DNA of 31,526 nt, taken from positions 1 to 31,526 of the forward strand of contig CAXIUT010000086.1 of NCBI GenBank assembly GCA_964035545.1, read 5' to 3'. A program made the translations under genes and the position numbers. The number at the start of each line of letters is the position of its first letter. The stretch's first letter is position 1. Below, in pieces: positions 1 through 31,526 of this stretch. The notes beneath the pieces were generated by a model. That model was not told the origin of the DNA. It did not search any database and worked only from the letters and a program-made list of their open reading frames with translations. Source of the DNA: Bugula neritina (Eukaryota > Animalia > Bryozoa).

Positions 1-81
1 CCCAACCCCAACCCCAACCCCAACCCCAACCCCAACCCCAACCCCAACCCCAACCCCAACCCCAACCCCAACCCCAACCCC
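1..81. repeat. Left telomere, (CCCCAA)n, C-rich strand
   Basis: Perfect CCCCAA tandem array from base 1 to 81, then unique AT-rich sequence. Same hexamer as Tetrahymena-type ciliate telomeres. Confidence 0.99.
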
Positions 82-192
82 GAGTAGTTATATTTATTAT
101 CATATCGATCATTTAAAAATATCATTAAGGAATATCATTGAAGATAAATAAAAGAATATGATAGAGATAAGTAGTGAATATAAAATGGAGTA

Positions 193-1490
193 TCATTTCT
201 TTTTGTTGACTCTTACATTTACAGGAACGCTTCTTTCGTTGTGAGTAGATGCTTTTTCAACAGTTTTTTGATAGCTTCCATCTTTATGGACATGAACTAC
301 TATTTATGGTTCAGAACTTCTAGATTCTACTTTTCTTTTTTATAAAAACGATTGGATCAGATCTAACTCTTTTTGTTGTTCTTCTATTGTTCTAACAAGA
401 GATTATCTTTCTTTTTGGTATTTGAATACATTTTCTTAATGTTGTTTTAGACATTATTCGTATTAGTTGATAGTTGATCTATGTTTATCTTAAAAGATTT
501 GTATTTATTGAACTAAATGAGCTATTTCTTCTTTAAGTTTAGCATTCTATAGCTCTAGCTACTAATCTCTAAAAGTAGTAGGTTCAATATATTTGGTAAC
601 TATTTTTTCTACTTAAACTATTTTTTATACTATTTTTTATACTTAAACTGGTCTTTAGATATAAACTGGTTCAACTTTAACTTATTTTTTAACTTTTTTG
701 CTATGATCTAACTCTTGGGTTAAACTTTATATCTTTTATGATAACTTATTGATATTACCTTTACATTTAGAGTGTACTTTTTATACTTATTACAATTCTA
801 ATTTGATTTGATTGTATTGATTTTAATGATCTTTTTTTATTTTTTATAATTTGTTTTATAGCAGTTCTATTTGCTAGTTTTTAGAAAGTAGATTATTTTT
901 TAATTTTTATACTTATGGAATTATAACTTGATATTTCTTTTAATATTATTTTACTTTATGTTTTAAATGTTAATTCTATGATTACAGTTGTTGGATTTGT
1001 TCTTGATATTGTTGGGTTATTCTTTTTCTCATTATTGTTACTTCTTATTATAATTTTACCTACCAATCTCTTTCACTTTTATTTCCTCGACTTCTGATCA
1101 TTTGCAGTTGGTTATCTTTATCATTTATTTCATTTTATAGCTATTTTTATTTGTATTTTAGTATTTAGTTTTACTTTTATAGAATCTTTACCTTTGCTTA
1201 GAGATTTATTATTCTTGAAGTCAAATTTCTTATTTAAACATTTTTGGTGTTAACTATTTGGTTTTGTTATGCTTCTTTTGAAGTAAATTATTGTTGCTGA
1301 ATGAATAGATAGTTACCATGAGAGTAGAACATTATGCATATATATTTTATTTGAGACGACCCATATCATTAGTCGCCTGTTTTTGTAGACATAAATATTT
1401 CTATTTCCACATTTATCTCTATTCCAGAAGTTGTTCATCCAGAGTTATCCGAGTTCCGCAGTGGCATCGGCATTTGCATAGATCATCCAT
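193..1490 (-). CDS. Coiled-coil protein (~425 aa) with a short alveolin/IMCp-like V/E/K/I-rich repeat; one 20-nt intron (1297-1316)
   Basis: ATG at 1490 (MDDLCKCRCHCG...). Removing GTAACTATCTATTCATTCAG avoids an early TGA and gives an E/K/Q-rich frame ending at TGA 193-195. 601-660 encodes IERPVEVEKIVEKIVEVEKI when TAA=Glu. Confidence 0.8.
1297..1316 (-). other. Tiny spliceosomal intron, 20 nt (GTAACTATCTATTCATTCAG)
   Basis: GT...CAG ends. Removal restores the long frame; the unspliced frame hits TGA within about 30 codons. Confidence 0.8.
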
Positions 1491-1647
1491 AACGAAATAA
1501 TTATAGAATTTAAATTATCATTGTTCAATGTTTAATATTATTTTATTTAAAAGAAAATTCAGGTATTTTGATGATTTGATCTTTTGAAGTTATAGTTCTT
1601 TCTAATTAAGTTTTATTTATTTAATAACTAAAAATAAGAAAGATTGA

Positions 1648-4293
1648 TCATTATTTATTTTAGGATTATTTTATAGTTAAAAATTTAGGTCTAACTCTGC
1701 CTCTACAAATAGGACATCTTAGATCTTGAACTAGCCATTTATCCCAGCATTACTGGCACATGCAATGATTACAAGTATTACTTTTTACCATTCTGCACTA
1801 AAGTTGACAAACTGGACATTGTTAATTTAGCTGGTTATATTGCTTTTACTGTCTTACGCATAAACAATTTCCCTCTAGTAACTCATCTTGGCATCTTCTT
1901 GCTTACGTATTAATTCTTCAGCATCGATTTATTCTTTCTTCTTTATGTCTTAGACCTCTTTTTCTGTCTTCATTGTTGCTATTAATTCTTGGAGAGATAA
2001 GTTCTTTGATTATCTGACTTCTTTTGGTTTTGTCTATACTATTGGTCTACTGATGGATTGTCTTAATGATTTTTGTGGTTGGGAAAATGTTTGTGAATCT
2101 AAGGAAAATCCTTTGACTGATACAAGACCCATGTCTTCTTTTATAGCTGTTAATTCTGGAGAACTTTCATTGATGTGATTTATTGCTTTTATTTTGGAAA
2201 TAAACTAGTTGAATTTTTATGGTTTAGATATGTTCATTCGAGCCCAGGAAGCTAGCTGAGCCTAGATGTCAGGTTTTGCAAATCGCGAATCAACGAGATA
2301 TACTGAACCATAGTCATCTGGAGTTCTTATTAAACGGCCAATTCCTTGATTTATTGCTCTTACTGTTTAGGCTTGGTACCATTGATTTCCATTGATAGTT
2401 GTTTGACCCTTTTCAGAAAGAGAATTGAGATACTTCATTTTGGCTTTTACTTTTACATCTTGTGAATTAGGGTATGGCACTCCTACTATTACAACTGCTC
2501 TGCATTTTTTTTGTGAGAAATCAAGACCTTATGAGATTCTACCTCTTACTAGAGCACAAAGAAGAGCTCCTTTCTCAGATTGTGCTTATTTCATATATCT
2601 TTCGAGAATATTAGCGAAATCAGAGCTGTCTTTTTTTTCAAAATATATATTTTTGAGTTAATATAATTTGGTTAGTATTTTTTGAGTATTGAGGTAGTTT
2701 CTCATTTGTTATAAGAAGGCATATGAAGGAAAAAGAGCCACGACTCCGTTTGGTGTATGTTTAACTATTTCATATAGGGCTTGAGAAATATCTTAGAAAA
2801 GGGTTTAGTTTTTTCTATTTTAGAATTTTGTGTCTAGAGGTCTTCCTGTAGGTCCTACTCCTAAGATAACTGTATTAGTCTGTTAAGGACAAAGTACATG
2901 TGGACAGGAGACTGGTTGAGCAAAATCAACTTTTAATTATAATGGCCACATTTTGAGAGGACTAAGAGTTCCTGAAGTTAGAATAATTGATCTTGGTTTA
3001 TGTTCCTGTATGACTTCTTTGAATCCACTTGATGGGTCAAGGCAAAATATACTTATCTTCATATCTGCTCCTTCATAAGCTATTTGGATGTTATATTGAG
3101 AATGATATTATTATGGTCTAGAGTGATTTATGATTTCACTAACTGTTTCCATAAACTTCATCCAACTTTCTAAAGCCCAGTAAGGATAGAAGATAATATC
3201 ACTTCTAAAGAGTTAATATTTTTTAATCATTTCTTTTATATTTTGAGATAATTTGCCAAATTGACATTGGGAAGTAGCTTTATCCAGAGTAGATATAAAT
3301 GTTTTTGATTAGAGGACTGTCCCTGATGAATCAGACGAGATATCTAGCATTTGTATATGTTCATAGATAAGTTGAATATAGGCTGCATTGATTTATATAT
3401 CTTATAAAGATACTTTTAAGGTTCTATTATTGTCTCCTTCACCTGAATCTTTCTGGTTTTTGTTCTCATTCAACTTTTATAGTCTGAGATCTTAAATTTG
3501 TTTAATAGTTCGGGTTAAAGTGCTCAAATTTAAGTTGTATTCTCTGAACTGTTAGCAAACTGACTGAATATTATGAGCTTCATCTAGAATAAGGATAGAT
3601 CCTTCGAGTCTGAACCCTTAATCATTTGTCCAAACCTTTTTATCAAAGAGGTAGTTATATGGAATAAGGACTATGTTAGCTATTGGTCTGGAATATCTTT
3701 AATAGAAGAAAGGACAAAAGTTTTATAACTTTCCTTTGATAACTAATTCTTAGATATCAAACTTCTTTGCTAGTTAAACTTGTTTGTCATAGTAAATTTA
3801 ATTTTTGTAGAAATGGCAACTTCTTCCTTTCTTCTGGGCTATTCTCAACCGACATTAAAGTTATTTATCTTGTCCTTTCAGCAATTTAAGATCCTCATTG
3901 GCACAGGTTTGATCTCTACTGCTCAAAATGGCTATTTTAACTTGATAGCATAATTTATTGATCTATGCTACGACTTGTTTGAGTTGAGCATGAGTTCTTG
4001 ATGCATATACTATCTGTATGGGAGGTTGGTTGGTGCGTTCTTGTTCTTACATAACATACGAAAGAGTCGAGCAGAGAAGAGATATTGTTTTACCTGTTCC
4101 TGTTGGACTTTGAATAAGTGCATTTTGTTTATTTTTGAGACAGTTAATGATCTAGATGAGAGAGGTGTACATAGTTGATGTATGTGTTTTGGGACTAATA
4201 GATTTAGTATGGAGTGTAGACTGGAGTGGAATCGAATTGGTATTTATAGTGTTTTGAGGCGTCTTTGATGGATATTCTGTTGGTTTTTGACAT
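1648..4293 (-). CDS. Fe-S cluster SF2 DNA helicase of the RTEL1/FANCJ (Rad3/XPD family) type with a C-terminal C3HC4 RING finger; 19-nt intron at 4152-4170 and a second frame change near 1849-1906
   Basis: Motifs: [11 protein letters not shown] (Walker A), YASRTHAQLKQV, four Fe-S Cys (SRDQTC...ECR...SCHFY...CPFF), PYNYLFD, ILDEAHN, IILTSGTLSP, RGRISEGLDF, RAINQGIGRLIR. A RING (CPVC...CNHCMCQEC...CPIC) lies in another frame ending at TGA 1648-1650. The unspliced helicase frame would end at 1518. Confidence 0.88.
4152..4170 (-). other. Tiny spliceosomal intron, 19 nt (GTACACCTCTCTCATCTAG)
   Basis: Removal joins SQNTYINY to [22 protein letters not shown], which aligns without gaps to the recalled RTEL1 N-terminus ([30 protein letters not shown]). 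Confidence 0.88.
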
Positions 4294-4428
4294 GGCGGTC
4301 AAATACTATTGTATTTATCAGAAGTAATTAAGTGATTAATAGATATAAAAGGTTATGATATAACGTTAATTAGTTGATATTGTGATTATTTTAGGTTAAT
4401 TAGTTGGTTTGAGATGATATAATGATAA

Positions 4429-5916
4429 TCATAGGAATTCGACCTAGTCATGTGGGTGTTTCAACTGAACAAAGGGATAGATTTTAGGTTCTACCATATT
4501 TTCAGGTAAGGTGATTTGGACAAAGGGTTCGCTTGCTCCTGTTCTTAAGAATTTGACTTTTCTTTGTTTGGATTAGACTTCGATAATGATGAGAGTATAT
4601 TTTTCGATTTAATCATATTTAATACTCTTATTTTTTCCATCAATGTACAACTCATAGTTATCACCACAGCCCATAAAGATAACTTTTTTTTGACATTTAT
4701 CAATTTTCTGTAGATTTTTATGTTATTCACACATAATGCCAAAACTGATGTCTTGATTTGTTACTTTATTTATCATCAATGTTATTTTTTGTCTCTTCTT
4801 TTTAGGAATTTCATTCTGGCTGTAAACATGATATTCTTATCTCTACTCTTAGCTCTCTTGTCCTTCATTTTCTTTTTTAGTTATCTTTAAATTATCTATT
4901 TGGAATTGATTTAGGTATTTATTTGACTCGTCCAGTTGAAATATAAACTATTGAGTACATGTGGTGATATATTTTTAGTTTTAGTTGGAAATTTTAGCGG
5001 ATCGTAAGGGTGAAATGTTTGGTTCTGATTAGTCTAGGTTTATATATGATATTGATGTTTGGTATCTTTGGGTTATCTTTTTGTTGCCTTATTAGTTAAA
5101 AATTTTCTTTTTTGTGTCAGCCAAAGATGTAAAGTTGACTTCTTTTTTTTCTTTTGGTTATCTTTGTTATTCTAACCATTAATTGGCTGATTTTTTATTA
5201 TCTTTTTTTGTCTATTTTGTTTATTTTCTCTATTTTTGTTCTATTCTTTATGAATATTGATTTTTTTTGTCATTTATATTGTAGAATTGTTAAAAGTATT
5301 TTTAGCATTATTTTCTCTCTTTATTTGAATTTTTGTGAGCCTAAAAGGAGTCTTTTTATCTTTTGTTATTTTTATTTTTTTATCTATCATTTTTTTCTTT
5401 ATTTTTAGCAAAAATGAATATTGTTTTTTACAATTTTTAAATTCTTTTTTAAAGTTGTGAACATTTTTAGTTATTGACTTTATTTTGCTACTCGATTGTA
5501 TTTTGCCACTATTATTGGAATTTCTTTTATAGTTTTTAATATTGTTTATTTTTCTTTTCCAGATTTTCATTTTCAAGTTCCAGACTGTCTACTTTTCTGA
5601 AAGGTCTTGAATTCATAGGTATTTTAACGAATTTAGTTATCTTTAATTCCACCAAATAGATTTTTAATGTAAGGATGTTATTTTCCAAAAAAAGAAGAGT
5701 ATAGCTATCTTTGAGATATTCATATAGTTCTAGGACAGTATAGATGAAGTTAGCACAAGATGAGGGAAGATTTGATTCTTTGACCACAGCAGTAACTAAC
5801 AGCTTTTATGAAAACATTCTTCCTGAGATAAACAGTTCACTTTCTTCTAGCGTACAAGTAAAATCAAACTTGATAAGGGTTCTTTTGAAGGACTTGGGAC
5901 CAGTCTAGACGATCAT
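4429..5916 (-). CDS. Hypothetical protein (~495 aa): N-terminal globular region, central coiled coil, C-terminal SPRY/B30.2-like beta domain
   Basis: Frame is open from ATG 5916 to TGA 4429-4431 with TAR=Glu. The C-terminus (ISFGIM...KVKFLRTG...KIYPFVQLKHPHDEVEFL) resembles SPRY-like ends; the domain call is pattern recall only. Confidence 0.75.
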
Positions 5917-5982
5917 TGCTATTTATTTATAAATTACTAATTAATTAAAATTGCCTCTTAAAACTATATATAATCATCTGAA

Positions 5983-8166: not shown

Positions 8167-8205
8167 TTGAATTTAAATAACTGTTGGTATAATTATGATA
8201 TAATA

Positions 8206-8898
8206 TCATTTTTTAGTTAGTTTGTAGACCTAAAAATCTATTTATTTCAAAAGTGGGTATCTTTTAACACCATCTGCTGAATTCTACAATGGACTTTAAA
8301 AATATTGTTCTTTCTATAATTTCTATTTCTATACCATAAATATTTCATCTTCCACTTTATCTAAAAATAACTAAGCATAGTTCTTTCTTACTGGAATAAC
8401 TATGATACCCAAACCTCCCTTAGCAAGCTTCTATTTGAATATTTGGTAGAGATCTGCTACTGGGCATCCGAAATAGACTATATCGCTGCCCATGATGATA
8501 TCGTATGTTTTTGGTTATGGTTGGTGTTTGGTCCAATCTAGTTCGTAGACTGGACATTTAATATCATTTTTATTCATGTTTCTTTTGATGTTGTCAATGA
8601 CAGCTATGTGGTAATCAGTGATATCGACTTCTTTTGCCTATGTCCATTTCTTTGCGGCTAGACCGGCGATACCAACTCCTGCGCCTAGTTCTAGAATGGT
8701 TTTGTTTTTGAAGATGGAGTTGTTAGCGATGACGTATCTGGATAGGAGGATTCCTGCTTACCAGAGTCGTAGTCCATCGAGTTGATGTGGAAATTTATCT
8801 ATGTTGTTGATGAGGAGGGTCATTTTGAAGTTGTGGTGGATGATGATTTTTTATAGTTTTGAATCGAGAGTCATAGTTTTAGGATTGTTATTTCCCAT
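8206..8898 (-). CDS. Family-16 seven-beta-strand protein lysine methyltransferase (METTL21/EEF2KMT-like), 230 aa
   Basis: DGLRLWEAGILLSRY, KTILELGAGVGIAGL (motif I), VDITDY, ELDW, YDIIMGSDIVY (DxxY motif). ATG 8898, TGA 8206-8208. Confidence 0.9.
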
Positions 8899-8996
8899 TG
8901 TATAAAATTAAATAGTAAGATATTATTGGGATAGTTATTAATATGTTAAATGATATATGTTTAGCCCTCCAAATGATATTAATATGAATAATAATT

Positions 8997-10134
8997 ATGT
9001 AATAGTAGGAGGATAATCATACGCCTTTGGAAGTGATTTAAAATCATAGCAACCTGCCCTTTATTATTTAGAATTATACCAAAGAAGATAGGTTGAAGGA
9101 AAGGTAGAATCGACCTAAGTTGGGCTTGAGGAGGTTGACTTAAGATAAAAAATTAGTATCAATAGACCTGGATATTCCTGTTGATTAAAACACAATTATT
9201 AAAGATAAGTTTGATTGGGATCTAACTAAAGATAAAATATCTCCCACTTAGTTTTCAAAGGAGTTGGTGGCAGCTTTGAATTTGCCTGAAGATTATGTTG
9301 AAAAGATGAAGGAGCAGATATTATCTCAAATAATGCAGCATATTAAAACTCATACCAGGCAGAAACCACCAGAGTAACGATAGACTTTTGATGACCAGCT
9401 GTACAATCGAGGATATCAGCCTATTCGTTTCAACAACGAGTACGCTGAGTAGGATATTGAGAAGGAGTAGAACTAGAAGAAGAAGATGTCTCGGTTGAGA
9501 AGAAATGATATGAAAAGGGCGACTGTTGCTAACACTATGCCTCCTAATAGATATTTTAAGGAAAAGAAGGTCTGTCGGAACTGTCGGAATGAAAATGTGA
9601 CTCCTGGTTTTGAATGTAAGAATTGTAAGATGCCATTTGAGTTGTTGTAGTTGTTGAATTTGGATGATAGACGGGTGAAAATATCAGTGAAGTATTATTA
9701 GAAGATAGCTAATAAGATACCTTTGCTAACTTATTAAGCTAAGAAAAGACATTTTTAGAAGGAAGATTTCGATTCTTTCTATGCTACTTACAATAAAATA
9801 AAAAACATTTTTTAAAATAGTGATTAGTTGTCAAAGGAGAATCTGCATCAGGTTAAGTATATTATGGAAAAATATCATTAGTATTTTTTGAATGGACAAA
9901 TCGATTTCAACGACTAAGAAATCATTTAGTATTTTATTATTAATATTTAGTTAAAAGGATCTGAGAAAGGATTCTAAGGAGTAAGATTTGGCTCGATCTA
10001 AAAGACCTAGAGGTCGTCCAAGAAAAATAAAAATAATTAATGACGATTTAATACCCAATTCTGATAACAATTAAGAAGAGTCTTCTTCTTAAAGTGAAGA
10101 GGAAGAATCGTAGTCTTCAGGGGAAACATCTTGA
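8997..10134 (+). CDS. SNF5/SMARCB1/Sfh1-domain chromatin protein with a CxxC...CxxC zinc ribbon and a C-terminal AT-hook; 22-nt intron 9929-9950
   Basis: LVSIDLDIPVDENTIIKDKFDWDLTKDKISPTEFSKELVAALNL matches the SNF5 repeat. CRNC...CKNC follows. After splicing GTATTTTATTATTAATATTTAG the frame gives KRPRGRPRK and an acidic tail ending at TGA 10132-10134. Confidence 0.82.
9929..9950 (+). other. Tiny spliceosomal intron, 22 nt (GTATTTTATTATTAATATTTAG)
   Basis: AT-rich GT...TAG; removal brings the AT-hook and acidic tail into frame. Confidence 0.82.
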
Positions 10135-10260: not shown

Positions 10261-10659
10261 TCAATCATCTTTCTTTTTGATTCTACTGAGAAGATCCATT
10301 TTAGCGTTTTTTCCGACTTAAAGTAAATTTTATTTTATTGTACCTTTCTTCATTTCATACTAATCCTTTGCTATTTCGATCTTATCCTTGGCAAATTCAA
10401 CTACTTTACCTCTTGCTTCAGATATCTTCTGAGATTTGATAGAATAGTGCATGTAAAGAGAAGGACCTGCCAGAAGAGCCAAATTTAAAGCTACTTTTCC
10501 CGTAAAAGGAACATTTGGTATAAATTTGAGTAAATAATTAAAAGGAACTAAGGAGACAGCTGAAAGTCCAGCAGTTATTTGCATTTTTTGTTTGTATTCT
10601 TCTGAAGCCTACCGTATAAAGGTTTGACTTTACTTCTTAAACTCTTTAAGATGCTACAT
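10261..10659 (-). CDS. Small predicted two-TM membrane protein, 132 aa; paralog of 16317-16760
   Basis: MEHLKEFKKESQTFIREASEEYKQKMQITAGLSAVSLVPFNYLLKF...TGKVALNLALLAGPSLYMHYSIK..., ending at TGA 10261-10263. Confidence 0.78.
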
Positions 10660-10792: not shown

Positions 10793-13700
10793 TCAGCATT
10801 CTTTTAAATTTTTCTTTTATTGTTTTCTTAATTTAGTTCTGATACTTTCACCAGGTTAATTGACAGCTTTTTAACTGGATTCTGCTTTATCTAGACTGGG
10901 ATGGTAGACTTTCTTTTTGTTTAATGATTTCTTTGCTGATCTGTTGCCTTTTGCTTTTACACTGCCTTTAATCTTAGTAGCATTGGTATTGGTTGAATTG
11001 TCTTACTCTTGTTCTGGATGGTTAGCAATTGTCAATGATACTTGTTCTACTCCTTCTAGGATGATATCCATGAACATTTAGATGTCTTTTTCTATGATGT
11101 TAATTTTTTAAAGGAATGTAATATCTTATTAGTATGATGTTTGTTTGATGATTTCTTCAAGTTTTAAATAAGGATTATTAATATGATCGAAATTACTATT
11201 ATATGTTTTGATTTGCTGGGCAGACTATTTGTATTGAGAGAAATATGCCAAAGCACTGATCATTTATCGATAAGCCAAAACGATATTAGTTTATTTTGCT
11301 TGCATAGTGATATCTTTATTACTTTTTAATTTAATTATCAAATTTTCAATAAAAATTTGGTTACTGGTAGTAAGTTTATGCAAGCAGAAAACGATTTAGC
11401 TGAGTTCTATGTAATCTAGTACTTTTTGGCATTTTATAAGTTTTAACATAAAAGTAAAAGTTAAAGGTTTTTATCTAAGCATATCGTTATTGATAAGATC
11501 TCCTACTTTTTTGACTAAGGTGCTTTTGATTTTGATTTATTTTTTTTATTTTACCAAGTAGATGTTAGATTTCTTATGCGTTATTTGTGAAAACAAAGAT
11601 AGACATTATTTTTGTTTTTAATTAAAATTAAACATACAAAAAGGAGTGGTATCTTTAAGATTAAATACAAGTTAGCATAATTCTATTGATTAGCATAAAT
11701 TGATAAACAGCACTTTATCTTAAGTTTACTTGGTGTATATTTAAGTGAGCATTTTAGTGGTTATTTGATTGACTTTATCTGAAGGATGTATGAATCCAAA
11801 ATATAGATATTTTGTAAAACTATATAATCCTTACATCCCACACTTTAGTAGATTGTATAATATTTAATAAAAAATTTAGACAAATTATTAATCTTATTGC
11901 ACTTATTGGTATCTTATTAAATTATGAAATCTTTTTGAAAATTGCTATCTAATAAAACTGAGTAGTTGTATGCTGGTTGATGGCAACAGTGATGCGAAAA
12001 GGTTGTACATTGATTTCAGCAAAATAAAACTTTCAGTTTATTGATCGTTTAAACGGTTGAGTATTGATATTAGTCTGGAATCGATGAATATGATTTTCGG
12101 GTTGGTTTTCCAGAAGTATCTGAGGAGTAGTAAAAATTTTTTATAGAAGTTTACGAGTTGTTGATTTTATTTTATCACTTAGTCTGATAGTTATAAAGTA
12201 GATATGACAATATTGTAGATTCTAACGAACATGGATGTCGTTTATAATGTTATTTATGAAGAATATGTTTTTTATTTTAGTTTTTTGTTGTTATTTTATG
12301 TCATTTTCTAGAGATGATGATAGAATGCTTGGACTTTTTGTTGATCTATGTGGTATTTTTATATTTGTGTTACTAGTATGACTGTGATATAGAGACATCT
12401 GTTGAGTGTGAGGTAGCTGATCGTAAGTTATTAATTATATTTTTTATTTTTTTGATATTTTTGTTTGTTCTAGACATATTTATTGAAAAATAGACGACTG
12501 AATCGTTCGTAGTTGGCAAGTATGTTGAGTTCTAGTTCTTATAGTTGGTCTAGAAAGAGATGGATATTGACTAGTAGACAAATTTCAAGTTACAAATACT
12601 CGATGGATGATGATTTGATAGATTATCTTAATAAAGAGGACAAGTTGTGGAGTTATTATTATATTTTCGAGTTGAGGATGATGGGTTATATGATTTGATT
12701 GGTAGATTTTCTTTTGCTTTTGAGCCATATTTGTTTATAGTTGACTAGATCTTTACTAGTTGTTATTAGTTTGTTAGTATTGCTGCAGATCAGTAGAGTA
12801 TTTAAGAGGTCTAATTTGACATAATTAGGTAGTTATTTATCTGTTTATTTAGATGTACAGATTAGAAGTTATAAGAATCGAGAGGAATTGATGAATACGT
12901 TGAGTTGTTGTATATTTTTTAGTGATTTATTGGTTTTTGATTGATATTTTTTTTGTTGGCATATTTATTATTTAAAGTTGATAATATCTGCATAGACAAA
13001 TTAAATCACTACTGTTAGATTATAATTGATAACTTCCATAGTCTATTTACTACAATTTTATTTAGAAGTAATTTCAATCATCTGTCTAACTATCTACTTA
13101 CCAACTTCATTGATTTTACTAATCATATTTTGATTGATTTTGATTTAAGTCAAAATTGCTAGTATCAATTTTTATTAAACTTAATCTAATGAATGTATTT
13201 CGATTTGATTCCATGTGTAGGTTTGAAGATGTTTTTATATTTAATCTAACAAAATAGATTTGATTTCTGATGACTAACTTTGACATAGTTAGTCGAGTGA
13301 AGATAAAACTGTTTGTAGCAATTTCGATATATTATCATGGATTAGTATTTTTGATGTATTTTATGGATGATATTAGTATTTTTTGACAATGTTAGTTATA
13401 AATATTAAACTATGCAAGTAGCAACTTCCAAGAAGACTATACTTGTCTTTTGATTATTACTTTTAGTTGATAAATTTCATATTATAGACTAGTTTATCAA
13501 GAATATCGATAGAATTACTGACCATATCCATATTTTACATATCTATAATAGATCGACAGATATATTGATAGAGATCTTGTCTTTATGATATTTTATGTTT
13601 ATTTTTGAAGAAGATGTCTGATAAAAATTATAGACTTATTGAACTGACATTGTGATTGCTGTCTCTGAGTCGATATTGCAATCCTTTGATTATTTTATTT

Positions 13701-15355
13701 TTGTAGTTGCTTATTTAATATTTTTATTGGTTTTGCAACAATCCGTAAGAATCGAATAAAAAGTTAGTTATTGATGATTTGCTTATCAGTTTTATACTTC
13801 TCTATCTGATTTTATCGTCTTTTGCGTTCCAGAATATAAGAGTTATTTGAATGAGATTGGTTATTATCTATTTTATTGATAACTGTGCATGTGAAAAGAT
13901 AAAAGTGTTGTAGAGTTGATCTATTATCTATGCTGATATAGTCTATTAGATGTTGTTCATGGCGATGTTGCTATTGATATTGAACTATTATTCATATTTT
14001 TTTGTTTTATCTTGTTTTTTTGGTTATATTGAATGATAGATTAGCATTGCTTTTAGGGCTTATTTTATTTTAGGAATGCGGCAGTGGTGGGATTCGTTCC
14101 AGTATTTGCTTAGAATTAGAGGAGAGAATATCATGAGGTTTAGTTTGTCATTTGGTTGGGAATTTACGCTTTTGCAGCAGTTTTAGCAAATGGTGATAAC
14201 TGTGTTATGATTTTATGATATTTTAATAGATATTTTTTGATAAATTAGTCTTTATAAGGTGTTTCCTTTTTTTTATCCACAGTAACTGCAAATTCCATTG
14301 AAACTGACTTGTATTTTAGCAGATGTATACTATATAATTTTATTAGCATTCTTTTAGCAAAGTTAAAGCATAGCAGTAATATTTTAAAGCGAGAAGACTT
14401 ATTTATTTGATATTTTATGTTGTTATTTATCTTGACTAAGTGAATAATATATTTTGAATCTTTACTATATGAGCAAGCTGACGTGTTTTAGAAAGAAAGG
14501 GATGATAGGTAGTTATAATTAGCCTATATTTTGAACTAGACATTTGACTAGATCTTTGAAGAGGTTGAGTTAATCATATTAATCTAGAATTATTTTATTG
14601 ATTATTTATTTGATGTATCTATTGATATATTTATCATAGACTTGTTTGAGTGTCATCTATCCTTTCTATCTTAGTTATTTATTTCTTATCTATTTTAGCT
14701 ATTATAAATTCTTTTGGATTATTCTTAACACCAAAAACCAAATAACATCGATTTTATTTCCACTCAACAAAGTACATTCTATAGTTATTTTATCTCTATT
14801 AGTTTTTTTATTAGCTTTCTTTGTTTTCAGTTAACTAGTATTTAAATGAAAATCATAGTAGTGTCCAATAATTTAACTGATGAAGTTACAGGTGCTGGGT
14901 ATGGTTATTTTATTTGGAGTTATTTTTGATAAGATGAGTTATGTTAGATTCTGTATGACTGTTAGTTATATTTGTTGGACTGCTTTTTGGTATGATGACT
15001 AACTGAGTCTTTTTGATCTGGTTTACATGTTGTATTGGTTGGTTATGTTGTTTATCTTTTTTATTATTTGAAGTGACTAGATTAAGCATCCATTTTTATC
15101 TTATTACTCTAAATAGCATTGATTTTATATTAAAGAAATGTAGGTGTTTATTTTTTTTATCCTCTAGATCCTCTATTGTTTTAGTTTTGATATTTCTGTG
15201 CCTGGCTGATGGGTATCAATAGGTGATTAGAATGTTTGGATGTATTTGTCTGTCAGACCGAAAAGGAGAGTGAAGTATTGGATTCCTTTTAGGTTTTTTG
15301 GAGGTTATTGTTGTTCGTAAAAGACGGGTTTGGAATTTGATTTTGCTTGCCGCAT
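10793..15355 (-). CDS. Large alpha-helical HEAT-repeat protein (~1520 aa), possibly the cohesin loader Scc2/NIPBL (a condensin HEAT subunit is not excluded)
   Basis: About 1520 codons with no TGA found in frame, so the ORF itself is secure. DDKIRERSIKLIS...IKGLQYRLRDSNHNVSSISLEFLS...YQYICRSIID resembles the recalled NIPBL HEAT block (VRTKAMKCLS...RGVHGRLMDNSTSVREAAVELLG...YYDMLIERILD). The identity is tentative. Confidence 0.6.
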
Positions 15356-16027: not shown

Positions 16028-16234
16028 TCATCTAAGTCTTCTGGCTTATCTTTCGCTTTCCATGAGTTCGAGGACATCACCGATTTTGACTGGGCCTTTA
16101 ACATTTCTGATAAGATGACGTTTATCTGCTTCTTTTCCTGAGATGAGGATCACTTTCACTTGGGTAATACCTCCTCTTGATCCGGTTCTGCCTAATAGTT
16201 GAGTCACTCTTGCCTTAACTGGTTCTGAATCCAT
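16028..16234 (-). CDS. RPS28: 40S ribosomal protein S28 (eS28), 68 aa
   Basis: [16 protein letters not shown]...[22 protein letters not shown][TAA]ARRLR-TGA; the conserved end is ESEREARRLR. Confidence 0.98.
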
Positions 16235-16286: not shown

Positions 16287-16334
16287 TCAATTATCATTTC
16301 TAAACCAAATCAATTATCATTTCTAAACCAAATC
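16287..16334. repeat. Perfect 23-nt tandem duplication (TCAATTATCATTTCTAAACCAAA x2) spanning a stop codon
   Basis: Copies at 16287-16309 and 16310-16332, read directly from the sequence. Confidence 0.95.
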
Positions 16335-16760
16335 TATCTCTCCATTTAACTCTAGTATATCTCCTGTCAATTCAAATCTTTCTAGCCTGGCCTTATTTAC
16401 TTCAAATGCTTTCCTTTTTGCTTCTACTATTTGTACTTTTATAGAGTTATGAATGTATAAAGTAGGAGCCAAAAGAAGAACCATATTGATTCCTATTTTA
16501 CCAATAAAGGGCATAAATCCTGATCCAAATTTGATGTATTTATTGAAAGGAATTAAAAATGCTAAAGAAAATGCAAAGGTTGTGAATATTTTAGATTTGT
16601 ATTTGCCTGATAGTTATTGTAATTTTTATAGACTATGTTTATCTATGAGTATTTTTTATAGTTGTGAATATTTATTGAGAATATAATTGAATCTTTACTG
16701 TGTGGGATGTGAATGCATCAATTCTGTATATTATCTTACTTGAAAATCATTTGCTAACAT
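16317..16760 (-). CDS. Small predicted two-TM membrane protein, 147 aa; paralog of 10261-10659
   Basis: MLANDFQVREYTELMHSHP...KYKSKIFTTFAFSLAFLIPFNKYIKF...MPFIGKIGINMVLLLAPTLYIHNSIK...FELTGDILELNGEIDLVEK, ending at TGA 16317-16319. Confidence 0.8.
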
Positions 16761-18204: not shown

Positions 18205-20154
<1,950 letters not shown>

Positions 20155-22113: not shown

Positions 22114-22170
22114 AAAATATCATATATGATTACTATATTTATATTATGAGATAATTCTTATTTAACAGTG

Positions 22171-23122
22171 ATGAAAGAAAGCAGAATTGGATAAAACCCT
22201 ATCAAATGCACTATTTGTATATAATAGTACAATCGTAATAGAAGGCAACCTGTTGTAATTTGTTATAATCATCATACTATATGCAGAAAGTGTTTGGATG
22301 GTTTGAGGGGTAATCTTTTATGTCCTTTTTGTAGATAAAGGATCTAGTTGGATAAGGTAGCATCTAATGATAATATTTTAGCTTTTATTCCTCAATAAAT
22401 AGTACCAAATGTGAGGATAAACTATTTCAATCAGAACAATCTCAATAATATCAATAATTTTGAACAAAATATTTAAAATAATCATCATATTGATGAGGAG
22501 TTACCAATATTTAGAGATTATGCTGAAATTCCAGACTAAAGAATTTTCAGACATGTTGCTAATCAAGGCTATAGAATTGAATAGCCAAATCTATTTTAAG
22601 AAGTTCAAAGAATGTAGATACCTAATCGACATGTTGTTAACTAAAGATTTAATCATAGAAGAAGATTTAATAGACAAATTTAATATAACTAGTCTAACAC
22701 ATAATGTAAAAAGATAATAGCTTTCTTCATTATAATTTTTGTTCAATGTATTATAGCATTTTTAAACATTTATTTTGGAAGTTCTCCTTATAATTGTCCT
22801 GATTTTACCTAATAAATGGTGCTTAATCCGACTGGACATTGGCTAACTGCTATTGGAAGTCTTGAAACTATTCTTATTTTTATGCAGTTTATACTCTTTG
22901 CTTTAATTAAAGATATTACTGTTTCTCGAGATGGACCTTCAAGTTGCTTGGATTTGGTGTTCGGATTTCACTATTTTAAAACTTTTGTTTGGCTTTTCGT
23001 AGAAATATGTTTATTTAGTGATACTATTTCTCATTGCTAAGGAGGTTTTTATAGCTATGGAATTGTTTTTTATCAATATATTTTATTTAATTTTTCCTTG
23101 TTTGATAAAACTTTTATCTTGA
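22171..23122 (+). CDS. RING-HC finger protein with C-terminal transmembrane segments (putative membrane E3 ligase); 3' end uncertain (23122 after a +1 shift, or 23283 as read)
   Basis: CTIC...ICYNHHTICRKC...CPFCR at the N-terminus; several hydrophobic segments after 22730. Confidence 0.78.
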
Positions 23123-23160
23123 TTTATATATTAAATAATATTGTATTAAGTAATTCGATA

Positions 23161-23610
23161 TCATTCTAAACTTTTTTAAACCACTTGCTTTACTCTTCTT
23201 TCATATTCGTTCTTGTTTCCATTATAGATAGAAGCTGCCTCGCTATTAGCAGGGGAGTTAGGATTGGGATCTCCTAGTAATGATCGAATTGATGTCAAAA
23301 CGGCCCAAACATCATAAATAGGACTCCATTGATTTTGAAGAATATCTAGGCAGATTCTGCCGTCAGCATAAACATTGGGATGGAACATTTTGGTTAGAAA
23401 CTTAACTTTAGGAGGTTTGGTAGGATATTAATCAGTAAACTAGAGATTAAGTTAGAATAATCCTCCTTCCCATAAGGTTCTTTCTGGTCCCTAGATGAAG
23501 GCTGTCCACAGATAAAGGTTGTTTTATTCAGGAGAGGCATTTATTCCATTCTCTTCTTCTTGGCTCAACTTTTGAAGGTCTTTTACTAATCTCTTTTATG
23601 CTGCTTTCAT
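23161..23610 (-). CDS. UBC2: Ubiquitin-conjugating enzyme E2, RAD6/UBC2 type, 149 aa
   Basis: [10 protein letters not shown]...[40 protein letters not shown]...[13 protein letters not shown]...[18 protein letters not shown]. Confidence 0.95.
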
Positions 23611-23657
23611 TTATCAGAAACTATTATAAAAAGTACACTTGTAGTTTGGAGTCATAA

Positions 23658-23981: not shown

Positions 23982-23997
23982 ATATTAAGATATATAA

Positions 23998-25215
23998 ATG
24001 AGTCGTCCTCAAAAGAAGAGTTACGCTCAGAAGGTAGATTTTTCTGACGAAGAGATCTACTAGTAGATAAAAGACCAAATCAGATAAATCAAAGAAAGCA
24101 ACCTCAAAAAAGTAGAATAGCAAACCCAAATAAACGACCTCTACATGAATCGCAAACAGTAGAAGAGGAAGCAGAAGTATATAAATAATAAAAACAACAA
24201 TTAAAAACTTAATCTTCACGAGGTGGTTATCAAGCAAAGGGATTCATCTGATGATGAGGAAGGTGAAATTCATTAAAAACCTATCAAATCATAGTTCATA
24301 CAAAATGATTTCAATTTTTAGGGGGTGCCTTCGATTAGCAATTTAGGCGACCATATTAGACCACTAACACTAACAAGAAACAAGATAGTTGATTTGCTAA
24401 ATTCTAGGAAGTTTTAGGAATTGATGAAAGGATGTTTTGTGAGGTATTTGATTGATTCTACGATCAATTCAAATAATAATTCTTATATTATTGCGCAGAT
24501 AGTTGGGGTAACTGAGGGAAATAAGGAATATCAGGTGAATAGTATTAAGACTAAGGTGTTACTCAAGTTACAGGAAACTTCTGATAGCGTAGTAACTTTG
24601 TCTTTGCAGTTGATATCTAATCAGCATCCTCCGGGAGGGCTAGAAATATAGAAATGGTTGCAAACTAATAGAAACAAAATACCAAAATAGAAAGAATTGA
24701 AAGAGAAGTTATAGGAACATAACAAGTTGTTGGTGTAGCAGTTGAGTTCAGTCGAAATAGATTCTAATATTTGGAAAAAAGCACAAAGAATAGCTGAAAT
24801 GTTAGAATAGCCTAAAGAAGATATCAATTTATTACTTGATTTCGTGGGATAGAAACTGCATAATTTATAGGCCAGGATCGATGAGTAGATAATAGGTCGA
24901 AATACTAAGGGAGATCTTTCAAATTTACAGAAAGAGGCTAAATAGAGTAAAGAGGTGCACTAGAAGTTGTTGAAGATCAGAGAGAGTTATATGAAGAGCA
25001 GACAGGCTGCTGAGAAGTTGAATGCTCCTAAGAAGTAGAAGAAGTATAATATGAATTTGATTGAGTAGAAGAGAAAGGACTAGATCAATGAGAAATGTAA
25101 GGCTAGGACATTGATGTTGGCTACTTATGAGGGCTTTGTGAGGTTGAAGCAGAATATATTGGAGAATCATATGAAGTATAATTTTGTACTTGATGAGGAA
25201 GATATGCAATATTGA
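23998..25215 (+). CDS. RTF1: Plus3-domain protein, Paf1 complex subunit Rtf1-like, 405 aa
   Basis: LTLTRNKIVDLLNSRKFEELMKGCFVRYLI...YIIAQIVGVTEGNKEYQV...LQLISNQ...EIEKW matches Plus3. TGA 25213-25215. Confidence 0.85.
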
Positions 25216-25251
25216 TTGATAAATAAACTATTAATAATTATTTTTGTATTA

Positions 25252-26423: not shown

Positions 26424-26524
26424 ATTTTATCTTGAAATTCTAATATTATTATTAATTAACAAGAACTAATAGAACATAAACTATTTTAATATCAATAAAT
26501 ATCAATTAAGCAAAATTATGCAAA

Positions 26525-26725
26525 TCAATTTTATTTAACTTTTTTTTATTTGAATGCTCTTTCAACTTTATCTGAAAAGCTATCGCTAGATTTCCACATT
26601 TGAGGACAAGCCAGACAGCACCAGATACCAACGGCTAGCAGGTGGACAAGTATCAGGACATATACTACAACTTTGATGGTCGGGTTGACTTATCCCATGA
26701 AGTCGAATGCGGAGAGGGTCTACAT
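26525..26725 (-). CDS. Single-pass membrane microprotein, 66 aa
   Basis: METLSAFDFMGEVNPTIKVVVYVLILVHLLAVGIWCCLACPQMWKSSDSFSDKVERAFKEKKVKEN-TGA. Elevated GC matches the ORF; one clear hydrophobic helix and a basic tail. Confidence 0.8.
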
Positions 26726-26752
26726 GATTATTAATATCTTATTTATGTCAAA

Positions 26753-26761
26753 TCACGTGTG
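26753..26761. promoter_or_regulatory. Candidate E-box-type element TCACGTGTG in a 74-nt divergent promoter
   Basis: Lies between ATG 26725 (-) and ATG 26800 (+); reverse complement of the 9-mer upstream of BiP. Confidence 0.35.
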
Positions 26762-26799
26762 GAGAGTAATTAAATTGATTAGATTTTAAATATATTTGA

Positions 26800-27630
26800 A
26801 TGAAGGAGTCTGAGGCTGGTCTTGGGAATTGGGATTTCAAGTTTAGAGAAGGCGGGTTGGGTAAATCTGAATAGATGGATGCTATTACGACTGATTGTAA
26901 GCTGTTCAGGGCACCAACTATCATATTTCCTCAAAACGAAATGAAAATAATTGATAAAGGAGGAAATATCCAAATAACCTTCAACGCTAAGTAGGCTTTG
27001 AGGTTTATTAATTACTAGGTGAGGCAGAAACAGTATAATGCTGTTGATTCTCCTGGATAAATAAATACTATAAGCTATATTCCTAAAAAATTACATGTGA
27101 AACATGCATAGCATTGGAAGAGTATATAGAAACCTAAGGACATTGAGATAACATAGATAAAGTAGTGTTCTGATAGTTTTTTTTTATCAACTTTCAAAGG
27201 ATTGGTCGAGGGAAAGGTAAAAGTGTAGAAGGTAAAGGAGCCTGTAATACCGGTTGAAAAGTTAGGTCCATAAAACCCAATAACTTTCTATAACCAGGGA
27301 TCGTTATACTAAGATGAACTAGATGACAATGGACTGATTCAGTATTAGTATAAATTCAGGACGATGGCTACTTGTTGGTTCGCTTTGATAAGAAATTATG
27401 CTCGCATTGATTCAGTGACAGTGATCATATTCGATACTAGAATGTATTGGGAGCAGGGATGGAACAAAGTAGCTAGACAATTCATGGTTAAATAAATCAA
27501 CTGGAATTAGTTGAAATAGAAAGAAGGGTAGTTGCCTGGAGGATGGAGGATGAATCCTAATCAATCGCATATACTTTATCCTCATTTGAAGGAGGTCTTC
27601 GGGGAGAACTAGTTTATTCATTATGGTTGA
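26800..27630 (+). CDS. TIP41: TIP41/TIPRL-family regulator of PP2A-like phosphatases, 276 aa
   Basis: PTIIFPQN...ITFNAKEALRF...LYEDELDDNG...KFRTMATCWFALIRNYARIDSV...DTRMY. TGA 27628-27630. Confidence 0.92.
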
Positions 27631-27682
27631 TGTTGATTGAATTATTTTTATATTATTAAATTATTAGATAATTGTGGTTTTA

Positions 27683-29404
27683 TCATAGGACAGTTTGTAC
27701 AAATTTTTATACTTACACCCATAGGTATCTTTCTTTGATAAAATTTTTAATCATATTTTTGACCATCTAATTTTATTACCTAACCACTTTTATAACTGAA
27801 TTCTGATCCAAGTTATTTTTATTTTATCCGATTATTGAATTTTAGTAGATATCGATTTGTCTTTGAATGATGGCTTTTTTTTATAACAGAGTCCATGAGT
27901 TAAGAAGTTGATTTTCGGTATTAATATTTACAGAATATTATCTTATTATTCTGGGCATATTGGTCATGATATCTTCTTCATTCATTTTATAAAATTATGA
28001 ATATATTTGTTGTAATTTAGTCAATTATTTTGACTATTTTTATTATGTTTATGGAGTTATTACTTATTTTGGTCTTTTATTTTATAATTATGTTTTTAAG
28101 GTGTCGTTTATTTTCTTTTTATCTGTTAGTTCTTTTTATATTTTTTTGTTTTTATTTGTATTATCTGTTATTTATTTTTTCACTTTTCTTACTTAGATTT
28201 CATGATCTTTCTTCTTCTTTTGGACAGTATTTTCTTTGTTCACAATATCATCGTTTAGCTTATTACTTTAATTTACTATTCTTTATTTCTTTTTATCCAG
28301 TTAACTCTATTGAACTGTTGGTATTTGAGGTGTTTGTACTTGAGGTGCAACTGTTTTAGGGAGGGTTTTGAAGGATTTGCTTTTATTTGGTTTTTATTAT
28401 TATTTTTTTATGATGCAACAACCTGAATAAAGTGATATTTTATTGAATCCTTGTTTTAATAATTATTTTGAACAAAAACTATAAGCAGATGATATTTGAT
28501 TAAACAATTTGATTTTATTTGCATTTTATTGCATAGATTTTTAATATATATTTTTGAAGCCAAATCGAACAATCTTTTTTTATTTATCGTTTAAACATAA
28601 GATAGCTTTATTGACATTATTAACATACAATAATTGATTTTTCAATTTATTAAAAGCCTATCTAACTTTATTTCTTCCAAAAAGATGTAACAAATTGCAA
28701 ATATTTTATTTACTTTTATTTCCATTATTTTTAATATGATCTCCTATCATACTAAATGATTATTTATTGATTTTAGTTGTATTATTTTTTAGTTTATCAA
28801 TAAATAAAGAATACCAATTAGACTAATATTTTTTAGATAGTTGAATAGTGGCTAGTATTAGACATTTAGATTATATGTTTATTTTTGTTTTAGTTGTTGT
28901 TTTGTTTTACTTTAGTTTTGAAAATGATGTTTTTATATTGTTTTTTAGACATCTAGAAATGATATAAATTGTTGATATTGATTTTTTCAATAGAATTTTA
29001 GGATGTTACTATTCTTTTTATTCTACTTTTTGTCTAGGAGATAGTATCTTGGTTGACATTTTTGCTTATTATTTCTTTTATGTTATGCTTTGTTTCTTTG
29101 ATTCAGGAGATTGAGGGGTTTCAGTAGGCGATGCTATTCTTTTTATTTTGTTGAAAGATGGTTCTTAAGGTGTAGGTGATTTTGCTGTCTATTTAGTTCT
29201 ATTAGTTCTTGATATAACTTTTGGTCTTTAGTGTTTTATTTACTGTGTTGGAATTTATGATATTTATGAGGTGGCGTTGGTTTGTTCGGCTGTTGTTGTA
29301 CCTCGTTTGCTTGTTCTGGCAAATTTATTTGGAGATAGTATTGAACTATTCGGTGAGTCTTATTCTTTAATGGGTTAGATTGGTTTTTTATGTCTAGAAA
29401 TCAT
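27683..29404 (-). CDS. Hypothetical protein, 573 aa, with an S/T/P-rich N-terminus and helical K-rich repeats (weakly Sfi1-like)
   Basis: Open frame translated from ATG 29404 to TGA 27683-27685; recurring AFNKLK/GFNKI/GFKNI-type segments. Confidence 0.72.
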
Positions 29405-29541
29405 GATAGATTTTTTAGATTGTGATTACAATATATTTTATCAAATGGAAAACAAAATAATAAGTTTATCATCTATATCATTTGGTTAGAAATAGATAAT
29501 AATAGATAATATGAATAAGTAGTTTCTACTATAAAAGATAA

Positions 29542-31369
29542 ATGAATAATAATTCTTATAAGTTTATTGATTTTAGTCATAGATTATATAATACCGATAG
29601 CAATAATCTCCATGAATAAGAACTACTATCCAATAGATTTCTAGGCCCAATATTAAGGTAGTATATAGATAACGAAGACACATCATAGAAGATGATATAG
29701 ATATCTAAAAAGTACAGAGAAATGATACTTACATTTGAACCTGATGCTACAGATATCTTATAGCAAAATTTATCTAATATTCTTGAAGAAATATAAGAAT
29801 GGCAGATGTAATTTAGAAAGGAGAGTAGTTATCTATTAATATAGCTATTTATTCGTAATTTGCTAATGGTCAGTTGTTGGCCTAGAGACGGAAACATCCT
29901 CCATAAATGTGTCCATAATGTGGGTAATAAATTAAAAAACCTATTCAATGCTAATTTTGTGCATAAATCTTTTGCAAAAAATGTTGTAGTAGAAGTCGAG
30001 CGATACCTTTTCTTGCGAAAGAGGGGAGATTATGCTGTGAAAATTGTCATTGGAAATTCGTAAAGTTGTTTGATAATAAGGTATTTATCTTGTTATTTAG
30101 TATTTTTATTAAGAAAAGGAGAAATTGATTAATGTTATTAATTTTGTGAGAAATAAAACTAATAGGATCAATTAGAAAGTTAAAATTAAACAGAAAGAGT
30201 TGGATTAGATTAGAAATGAAAAGAGAGATAAGAAGATAAAAGAAAATGTGAAGGAAAAAGAGATTCAAGATTAATAGAAAAAGTTAAAAGCTCTTGAGGA
30301 ATAGTTCAAAAAAGTTATAGCTGATAAAGCAGAGTAAATCAAGTTATAGCAGAAAAGGAAATAATAAAAATAAAAAATATAAAAATAATAAAAATAAAGA
30401 GCCTAAAGATAAAAAATTAGATACTAAATATTAAAAAAATAAGAATAATAGCGAAGACTAAAAGAAATAGCAAAGGATAAATCTGAATAATCAAAATAAA
30501 ATGGATAATAGAAGATAGAATAATAAAAGAAAAATTAATAAAAAGCAATTCAATAGAACTAAATGCAGTAACAGTTGAGAAAGAAAGAGTAGTAGATATA
30601 ATAGCTAAGGAGACAACTTCAAAATAGTGCCAAAAAATCATAGAGATCATAAAATTCGACTAGTTCAAAAAAGTAGTCATAGACTCCTAAGCAAAGTATA
30701 AATTCGACTTAATAAAAATAAAAACAAATTAACTCTGCAACAACAGAGTTATCATAGAAAAGTCGGTCTAGAAAACAAAGTTCATAAATATAGAAAAAAT
30801 CTTAGAAAAAAGATTAAATTAAATTGATCTAACCATCTCATACAAGTCAAAGTGGAGTCAAAAGAACATCAGTGGTTGAATCTAAGTAGACAGAGTAAAA
30901 TGAGGAAATAAAGCCAGAATCAGAGTTGGAGAAAAGTTTGGCCAAAATGTTCAAGATCAAGAATGATGATCAGAAATCAGTGGTTAGCAGATTATCTAAA
31001 ACATCTAAAAGCGTAATTGATATGTCTGTAAACTAATTGCTTTCTTTGAAGATTCCTTTGGCTCGTTCTAGTTCTAAAGTAGAAGCACCTGAACAAATTT
31101 CAGCTAAAAAAAGCTAAACATCAAGTGAAAATGCTCTAAACTAGGAGCCAAGGACCCCTCTATCTACTCTTTCTTCTCCTAAAATCTAGCATCGCAATTC
31201 TTTGAAGATATAGGAATTGAATAGTCCTGAACTAGACAAACAGTCAGTGCAGATAAACCGTGACCAGATAATTCGTAATTCAAGTTTGATATCATCTTCT
31301 GCTAAGGATCAGACGATACCTTAGACTGGTGATATGGATAGTAATAAGTGTAAATGCGAAGTGATGTGA
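29542..31369 (+). CDS. FYVE/PHD-like zinc finger plus coiled-coil protein (~595 aa) with C-terminal CaaX (CKCEVM); two 20-nt introns
   Basis: CPEC...CEFCAEIFCKKC...CENC (eight Cys with FYVE-like spacing) is in frame after removing 29825-29844. The coiled coil and tail are in frame after removing 30081-30100. TGA 31367-31369. Confidence 0.85.
29825..29844 (+). other. Tiny spliceosomal intron, 20 nt (GTAGTTATCTATTAATATAG)
   Basis: GT...TAG; removal puts the zinc finger in frame. Confidence 0.82.
30081..30100 (+). other. Tiny spliceosomal intron, 20 nt (GTATTTATCTTGTTATTTAG)
   Basis: GT...TAG; removal avoids a TGA and opens a frame of more than 400 codons to the CaaX end. Confidence 0.85.
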
Positions 31370-31440
31370 TATTAATGAAATTATAAGTTTTATTTTCTTT
31401 ATATTTTTAATCAATTATGATGTTTTTATATTATGCTTCA

Positions 31441-31526
31441 GGGGTTGGGGTTGGGGTTGGGGTTGGGGTTGGGGTTGGGGTTGGGGTTGGGGTTGGGGTT
31501 GGGGTTGGGGTTGGGTTGGGGTTGGG
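31441..31526. repeat. Right telomere, (TTGGGG)n, G-rich strand
   Basis: GGGGTT array to the end of the window, with one GGGTT variant unit near 31511-31515. Confidence 0.99.

Follow-up and report, generated by a model that had tools for sequence, protein, structure and literature searches.

A probable ciliate macronuclear chromosome in the Bugula neritina assembly, with UAA and UAG read as glutamate and UGA as the terminator

The nuclear code in which UAA and UAG (together UAR, with R standing for A or G) are read as glutamic acid (Glu, E) and UGA is the stop codon is NCBI translation table 30; it was reportedly first found by Sanchez-Silva et al. 2003 via TAA codons at conserved Glu positions of alpha-tubulin. 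UAR = Glu is published as the code of peritrich ciliates (PMC11687900, PMC10553269, PMC4967479), and in one of these three papers peritrich UAR = Glu is inferred to have replaced an earlier reading of UAR as glutamine (Gln, Q) in Oligohymenophorea. In the uncultured Oligohymenophorea sp. PL0344, UAA is read as lysine (Lys, K) and UAG as Glu (PMC10553269). Three peritrich macronuclear genomes exist, with tiny introns of narrow length distributions (PMC13685798). Here we consider a 31,526-nt stretch of DNA, further called the window, which is the whole of one contig (C95) of the Bugula neritina assembly (216 Mb, 321 contigs). We are highly confident that the window represents one entire macronuclear chromosome from a ciliate of the Oligohymenophorea, most probably a peritrich that lives on the sequenced host or together with it, and that its UAA and UAG codons encode Glu, with UGA as the terminator. 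The same meaning of the three codons had been proposed in an initial annotation made from the letters of the window; it is supported by several independent tests, namely codon exchange between orthologues, distant-homologue profiles, the conservation of gene ends, genes of transfer RNA (tRNA) with the CUA anticodon, and an altered eukaryotic release factor 1 (eRF1), and all positions cited in that annotation are present in the sequence where it had placed them.

The assignment is based primarily on codon exchange. A search with a long stop-free piece of the gene for BiP, the HSP70 protein of the endoplasmic reticulum (ER), yielded dozens of proteins 85–95% identical to it from metagenomes and two NCBI assemblies. 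Three orthologous contigs, L048 from GCA_020049755.1 and L054 and L055 from Joint Genome Institute (JGI) metagenomes, are syntenic with the window at 71–84% DNA identity, with the common gene order SNF5-like ... RPS28 – BiP – UBC2 – Rtf1, and TIP41 present in L055. Codons were paired one by one in six well-conserved genes. Window TAA is opposite GAR or TAR in 17/18 cases in L048, 15/18 in L054 and 4/8 in L055, and window TAG, in 28/35, 30/35 and 10/13 cases, respectively, while Gln is the partner of these codons in 0–2 cases and Lys in 0–1 cases per comparison. As controls, GAA is opposite GAR or TAR in 90/94 pairs, CAA opposite Gln in 28/38, and AAA opposite Lys in 75/80. In substitution profiles built from all aligned genes, Glu is the best residue for both TAA and TAG in each comparison, by 16–95 nats over Gln or aspartate; for TAG, the support for Glu is 54, 62 and 21 nats in the three comparisons.

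TAG-rich genes are resolved by their orthologues. The 20 TAG positions of Rtf1 correspond in L054 to GAG (13), GAA (2), GAC (2), TAA (1), CAG (1) and AAC (1), and the 13 TAG positions of TIP41, to GAA (8), GAG (1), TAA (1), CAG (2) and GCC (1) in the orthologue; TAA and TAG swap freely between orthologues. Replacement of the first-position T by G, by C or by A is in each case a single-step change, and still TAR–GAR exchange is in strong excess; therefore selection treats TAR and GAR as synonyms. The orthologous chromosomes are broken at other places than the window: L054 opens with a telomere, directly ahead of its SNF5-like gene. The G+C content of L054 is also higher, and it uses TAA and TAG much more sparingly (15 and 18 aligned codons, versus 131 and 67 in the window).

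Reading frames of the window follow the same code. If TGA alone is taken as a stop, the longest open reading frame (ORF) has 1533 codons, and 8823 codons belong to ORFs of at least 300 codons; in 30 shuffles read in the same way, the longest ORF did not exceed 556 codons, and long ORFs comprised 2019 codons on average and 3698 at maximum. Hence the long TGA-only ORFs are more than is expected by chance. Under the standard code, the window contains one ORF of at least 300 codons (389 codons). TAA and TAG together constitute 6.9% of codons in the gene set, compared to 4.8% for GAA and GAG. Genes were named using Pfam matches of stop-free pieces (helicase, methyltransferase, RPS28e, UBC, Rtf1 Plus-3, TIP41, RING), and BiP by homology. 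The features are as follows.

1..81, no strand: telomere, sequence repeat (CCCCAA)n
196..1332, minus strand: coiled-coil K/E-rich gene; ORF with about 39 TAA and 7 TAG, V-x-K-I repeat at about 601-660
1521..4172, minus strand: RTEL1-like helicase with Helicase_C_2; ORF with 40 TAA and 8 TAG, ends at TGA
8209..8898, minus strand: lysine methyltransferase-like gene (Methyltransf_16); in-frame TAA and TAG
8997..10131, plus strand: SNF5-like gene; weak SNF5 match found on the orthologue, 81–83% identical to orthologues
10796..15355, minus strand: large gene, function not assigned; 1533-codon ORF with 104 TAA and 23 TAG
16031..16234, minus strand: ribosomal protein S28e (RPS28), by Pfam; TAA at 16046-16048
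18205..20151, plus strand: BiP (ER HSP70), by homology; TAA at 18826-18828, 18952-18954 and 20122-20124
22171..23280, plus strand: RING-finger membrane protein gene, by Pfam; in-frame TAA and TAG
23164..23610, minus strand: UBC2/RAD6-type ubiquitin-conjugating enzyme, by Pfam; TAA at 23176-23178
23998..25212, plus strand: Rtf1 (Plus-3 domain), by Pfam; ORF with 20 TAG and 5 TAA
26800..27627, plus strand: TIP41, by Pfam; 13 TAG and 4 TAA
31441..31526, no strand: telomere, sequence repeat (GGGGTT)n

The large gene at 10796..15355 retains 36–37% identity to its orthologues across approximately 1500 codons, and in the SNF5-like gene a 22-nt GT..AG intron (GTATTTTATTATTAATATTTAG) at 9929-9950 joins the two frames.

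Distant homologues provide independent codon meanings. Profiles were built from 121 RTEL1 proteins and from 34 HSP70 proteins sharing under 80% identity with the window BiP, and they were compared with the helicase, with BiP, and with a BiP-like paralogue encoded on contig C291; for RTEL1, a 56-residue piece of the helicase searched against protein-cluster representatives retrieved largely fragments, and two full-length matches were used. In the combined profiles, Glu is the best residue for TAA (n = 59) by 67.8 nats above the next residue, and for TAG (n = 15), by 28.3 nats, while in the controls the same procedure assigns GAA/GAG to E, CAA/CAG to Q and AAA/AAG to K. Among columns conserved at 90% or more, TAA falls at E in 12/19 cases and TAG in 6/7, with none of them at Q columns; CAA is at Q in 19/22.

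Individual positions that had suggested the code in the initial annotation give the same result. In HSP70, the TAA of THLGG[TAA]DFD (18952-18954) is in a column where 33/34 distant homologues and 40/41 close ones have E, and the orthologues have GAG, GAA and GAG. In the helicase, the TAG at 3963-3965 and the TAA of DI[TAA]EL (3750-3752) and RGRIS[TAA]GLDF (2529-2531) are at columns with E in 119/121, 120/121 and 121/121 RTEL1 homologues; with TAA at 3552-3554 and 2937-2939 added, the columns of these codons are E in 116–121 out of 121. RPS28 ends in ESER[TAA]ARRLR, with TAA at 16046-16048 on the minus strand corresponding to GAA in 3/3 orthologues, and TGA directly after RRLR. The TIP41 TAG at 26992-26994 is opposite GAA in the orthologue, and the TAA of LY[TAA]DEL (27310-27312) is opposite GAG; the UBC2 TAA at 23176-23178 is GAA in two orthologues, and at the Rtf1 TAG at 24415-24417 the orthologues carry TAA and GAG. 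The V-x-K-I repeat at about 601-660 reads V[TAA]KIV[TAA]KIV[TAA]VEKIV on the minus strand, with TAA alternating with GAA. The string ATG-TAA-TAG-TAG-GAG-GAT does begin at 8997, which applies to its presence in the sequence, as this N-terminus is not aligned with orthologues.

Genes outside the window behave in the same way. In alpha-tubulin (C87), 78/84 references have E at the TAG of FFS[E]TGAGKHVPR, and E also occupies the columns of TAA codons in 107/111 and 92/105 references. Overall, TAA occupies Glu columns with at least 88% E among homologues in HSP70, RPS28, RTEL1 and alpha-tubulin. A telomere-adjacent block of C291 (G000:C291:52000-57841) is a paralogue of the window RPS28–BiP pair, and in both its BiP-like paralogue and its RPS28 copy TAA and TAG exchange with GAA. 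The two RPS28 copies share 82% DNA identity, and TAA and GAA are swapped at both Glu positions of ESEREARRLR. The BiP-like paralogue has TAG at LGI[E]TVGG and V[E]KGKR, in columns with E in 34/34 distant HSP70 proteins. It is 60% identical to BiP and contains 26 TAA and 10 TAG, several of them at invariant K, L, P and M columns, and is either fast-evolving or decaying. It is interrupted by an intron of approximately 23 nt.

The relative frequency of the two codons depends on the strand. The G-ending share of TAR is 0.45 in plus-strand genes, which are TAG-rich, and 0.17 in TAA-rich minus-strand genes; across TAR, GAR, CAR and AAR, this share is 0.32–0.45 in plus-strand and 0.11–0.17 in minus-strand genes, so that the TAA:TAG ratio tracks the strand-specific GAA:GAG, CAA:CAG and AAA:AAG ratios. 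As the same shift is present in GAR, CAR and AAR, TAA and TAG act as synonyms subject to a composition bias that differs between the strands. On the plus strand, G is more frequent than C over nearly the entire chromosome, constituting a chromosome-wide strand asymmetry.

The initial annotation had proposed to search for tRNAs with UUA and CUA anticodons, and two tRNA(CUA) genes were found on ciliate contigs of the assembly, at G000:C10:16787-16858 and C256:3981-4052 (minus strand). Both are 72 nt long, fold into a cloverleaf and are followed by a T-run, a typical terminator of RNA polymerase III. BLAST of tRNA(CUA) against the genome yielded only these two copies and no close tRNA-Glu or tRNA(UUA) paralogue, and on ciliate contigs the patterns for tRNA-Gln and tRNA-Glu(CUC) had no match. 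In a metagenome scan, members of the same tRNA family, some with the CUA and others with the UUA anticodon, were found in AT-rich contigs, including one that begins with a C4A2 telomere; in the two contigs that carry the UUA form and have genes in common, TAR codons are opposite Glu codons. Members of this suppressor family (L044, which is C10, L045, which is C256, L062, L124, L131, L064 and others) are 87–98% alike, with the C256 copy at approximately 70%. In the mechanism that we propose, UAG would be read by a dedicated tRNA(CUA) encoded by two genes in the assembly. A sister tRNA(UUA), the form found only in environmental relatives, would read UAA and probably UAG as well.

The suppressor tRNAs are 55–63% identical to the ciliate tRNA-Glu(UUC) (C54), the host tRNA-Glu and the host tRNA-Gln, compared to 81.5% identity between the ciliate and host tRNA-Glu(UUC). 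The first three acceptor pairs and the T arm are Glu-like, the inner anticodon stem and loop are Gln-like, and the discriminator G73 matches neither Glu nor Gln tRNAs compared. Judging by these sequences, the suppressors are not simple mutants of tRNA-Glu. As they are equally distant from tRNA-Glu and tRNA-Gln, the charging synthetase is not readable from the sequence, and charging with Glu would follow from the codon evidence rather than from the tRNAs. A tentative and rather doubtful explanation is that the UAR-reading tRNAs are a separate, old family of mixed ancestry rather than anticodon mutants of tRNA-Glu. If so, the mixed pattern would be expected from an ancestral oligohymenophorean suppressor reading UAR as Gln that changed its charging synthetase, and this would be a sense-to-sense reassignment through altered tRNA identity.

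As for the source of this DNA, C4A2/G4T2 telomeres at both ends of the window make it a complete ciliate macronuclear chromosome. The C4A2 repeat is typical of Oligohymenophorea, and the Tetrahymena repeat is the same as in the window. G+C content of the window is 25–37%. The large contigs C1–C9 carry animal-type tRNA-Glu and tRNA-Gln genes and arrays of ribosomal DNA (rDNA), and hence the ciliate is a passenger in a host assembly. Given the C4A2 telomeres, the 22-nt introns, the code itself and the occurrence as a hitch-hiker, a peritrich is the likely source, and we regard membership in Peritrichia as very likely.

One alternative retains UAR = Glu and assigns it to a non-peritrich organism with an independent origin of the code. 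A pattern search of the assembly for the conserved 3' end of 18S retrieved only the host rDNA arrays (C6, C135) and no ciliate 18S, no protein match is labelled as peritrich, and the suppressor tRNAs are not close to tRNA-Glu. We consider this alternative unlikely: UAR = Glu is reported only from Peritrichia, with a single origin inferred (PMC10553269), and the 22-nt intron fits the narrow intron lengths of the three peritrich genomes (PMC13685798). Further, the window DNA is present, wholly or partly, in sequencing runs under three organism labels from three studies, as expected of an epibiont, and close relatives are common in metagenomes; the C4A2 telomeres fit Oligohymenophorea.

Termination at TGA is seen at all seven orthologue-supported gene ends, each at most four codons from the same aligned position in both species. 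All comparisons of BiP, RPS28 and Rtf1, and that of UBC2 with L048, align as far as the TGA of both species; the alignments are one or two codons short of TGA in TIP41 and a small membrane protein, and zero or four codons short in the last SNF5 exon. In BiP, TGA follows the conserved C-terminus ...FSDDGL, which matches that of relatives. No in-frame TGA is seen in any supported coding frame of the window. Six-frame read-through of TGA in the window produced only off-frame echoes of conserved DNA, which were discarded. TAA or TAG occurs 2–12 codons upstream of true ends and is followed by residues matching relatives (AE[TAA] in BiP, VV[TAA]KSLE in UBC2, GEN[TAG]FIHYG in TIP41), and such read-through within a dozen codons of true ends counts against position-dependent termination. 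This makes quite improbable a code with no dedicated stop, that is, with TAA and TAG encoding Glu inside genes and terminating near the 3' ends of messenger RNAs, or with TGA sometimes being a sense codon, as in Condylostoma and karyorelicts. Such ciliate codes exist (PMC4967479), and the gene ends checked number only seven; all seven agree with TGA as the dedicated terminator.

The eRF1 gene, whose inspection had also been proposed, lies on the minus strand of C314 (G000:C314:16400-18700), and its stop-codon-reading loops are changed. QIKD, placed by residue count, substitutes for NIKS, and the GTS loop has a one-residue gap in the HMMER alignment to human eRF1 residues 8–46, while YxCxxxF (Y125, C127, F131) and GGQ are retained. 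A 24-residue NIKS piece had no match in PDB. The gene itself contains both TAA and TAG, one TAA being at human E55 by residue count, with further Glu correspondences at what we take to be FEPFKP and RLRMEKRH of the human protein. By analogy, these changes fit a UGA-only factor, as mutants of human eRF1 at T32 lean to UGA-only recognition (PMC3384315). Termination at UAA and UAG could then be avoided through the loop changes, NIKS to QIKD and one missing residue in the GTS loop. A tRNA-Pro(UGG) gene adjoins eRF1 on C314.

Several observations weigh against this reading of the codons and its proposed machinery. No tRNA(UUA) gene was found by the pattern search of this partial assembly, and the tRNAs that were found show the low similarity to tRNA-Glu described above; the proposed eRF1 specificity rests on analogy and on placement of QIKD by residue count. 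Among sequencing runs on record as RNA, none contains the window DNA. Some TAA and TAG codons of the BiP-like paralogue and the helicase fall where K, L, P or M is conserved, including one TAG of the paralogue at an invariant K, and the helicase TAG codons taken alone (n = 5) leave K and E undecided (K 0, E –1.1 nats).

The last two points, together with the existence of such codes (PMC10553269), could indicate a split code, with TAA = Glu and TAG encoding another residue. This is very improbable given the 28/35, 30/35 and 10/13 TAG codons opposite GAR or TAR, the preference for Glu in the three orthologue comparisons (54, 62 and 21 nats) and in the distant profiles (28 nats), the free exchange of TAA and TAG between orthologues, and TAG codons in columns with E in 34/34 HSP70 proteins (C291 paralogue), 78/84 alpha-tubulins and 119/121 RTEL1 proteins. 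The initial annotation had considered the evidence for TAG to be thinner than that for TAA, and this holds for profiles of distant homologues only, not for orthologues, which resolve the TAG-rich plus-strand genes (Rtf1 with 20, TIP41 with 13). Finally, the reading of both codons as Gln, as in Tetrahymena and Paramecium (NCBI table 6), draws on the same ciliate class and the same telomere repeat, on the 2/13 TIP41 TAG codons opposite CAG, on one BiP TAA in a column with Q in 11/41 close relatives, and on the Gln-like inner anticodon stem of the suppressors, and has a practically negligible probability, as Gln is 16–95 nats behind Glu in all orthologue comparisons that include more than a few positions and outside the four best residues in the combined distant profiles, TAR codons are absent from conserved Q columns, whereas CAA is at Q in 19/22 conserved columns, and TAA and TAG are at Glu positions at least 93% conserved in HSP70, RTEL1 and alpha-tubulin (TAG 55: 78/84).

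Some features of the chromosome and the assembly lie apart from the codon assignment. The window has approximately 19 genes on both strands with very short spacers, and the next ORF often starts within a few codons of the preceding TGA. Small membrane proteins at 10363-10608 and 16326-16613 (minus strand) are apparent paralogues, both aligning to one L054 ORF. The C-terminus of BiP (20122-20151) is DDGL, not KDEL or HDEL; close relatives are alike, Paramecium has DSDL, and DDGL may be a variant ER-retention signal. C214 (L002/L013, G000:C214:41188-45349) has at least 11 tRNA genes packed closely together, a cluster with an organellar or bacterial look, and C73, with 19% G+C and its own tRNAs, may be the mitochondrial genome of this ciliate; both are outside the question of the nuclear code.

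The code itself is already known, and our result confirms rather than discovers it. For a ciliate with UAR = Glu it adds a telomere-to-telomere chromosome, syntenic environmental relatives, the sequence of eRF1, and a family of suppressor tRNAs, with CUA in this assembly and UUA in relatives. Together, these make it possible to test directly how UAR passed from stop (or Gln) to Glu. Approximately 300 small contigs in the host assembly probably come from the ciliate hitch-hiker. Annotation with the standard code fragments genes on ciliate contigs, and these contigs deserve a non-host flag and translation with table 30.

In comparison with known systems, the window matches the peritrich code (table 30; Vorticella, Opisthonecta, Campanella, Carchesium) in all three assignments: both TAA and TAG are Glu, and the only stop is TGA. 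The window ciliate likewise has oligohymenophorean features and TAA at conserved Glu positions of alpha-tubulin, its membership in Peritrichia being likely only. Table 6 (Tetrahymena, Paramecium, Oxytricha) has the same two codons reassigned and TGA as the only stop, but UAR is Gln there and Glu here, by tens of nats. The machinery would be alike, with UUA/CUA suppressor tRNAs and a UGA-restricted eRF1, the tRNA(UUA) in our case coming from relatives and the eRF1 specificity being suggested by analogy. PL0344, an oligohymenophorean, also has tRNA(CUA) genes and reads UAG as Glu, and differs in UAA, which is Glu here as well. The tRNA(CUA) of PL0344 are 69–93% identical to its tRNA-Glu (PMC10553269), compared to 55–63% for the suppressors of the window ciliate.

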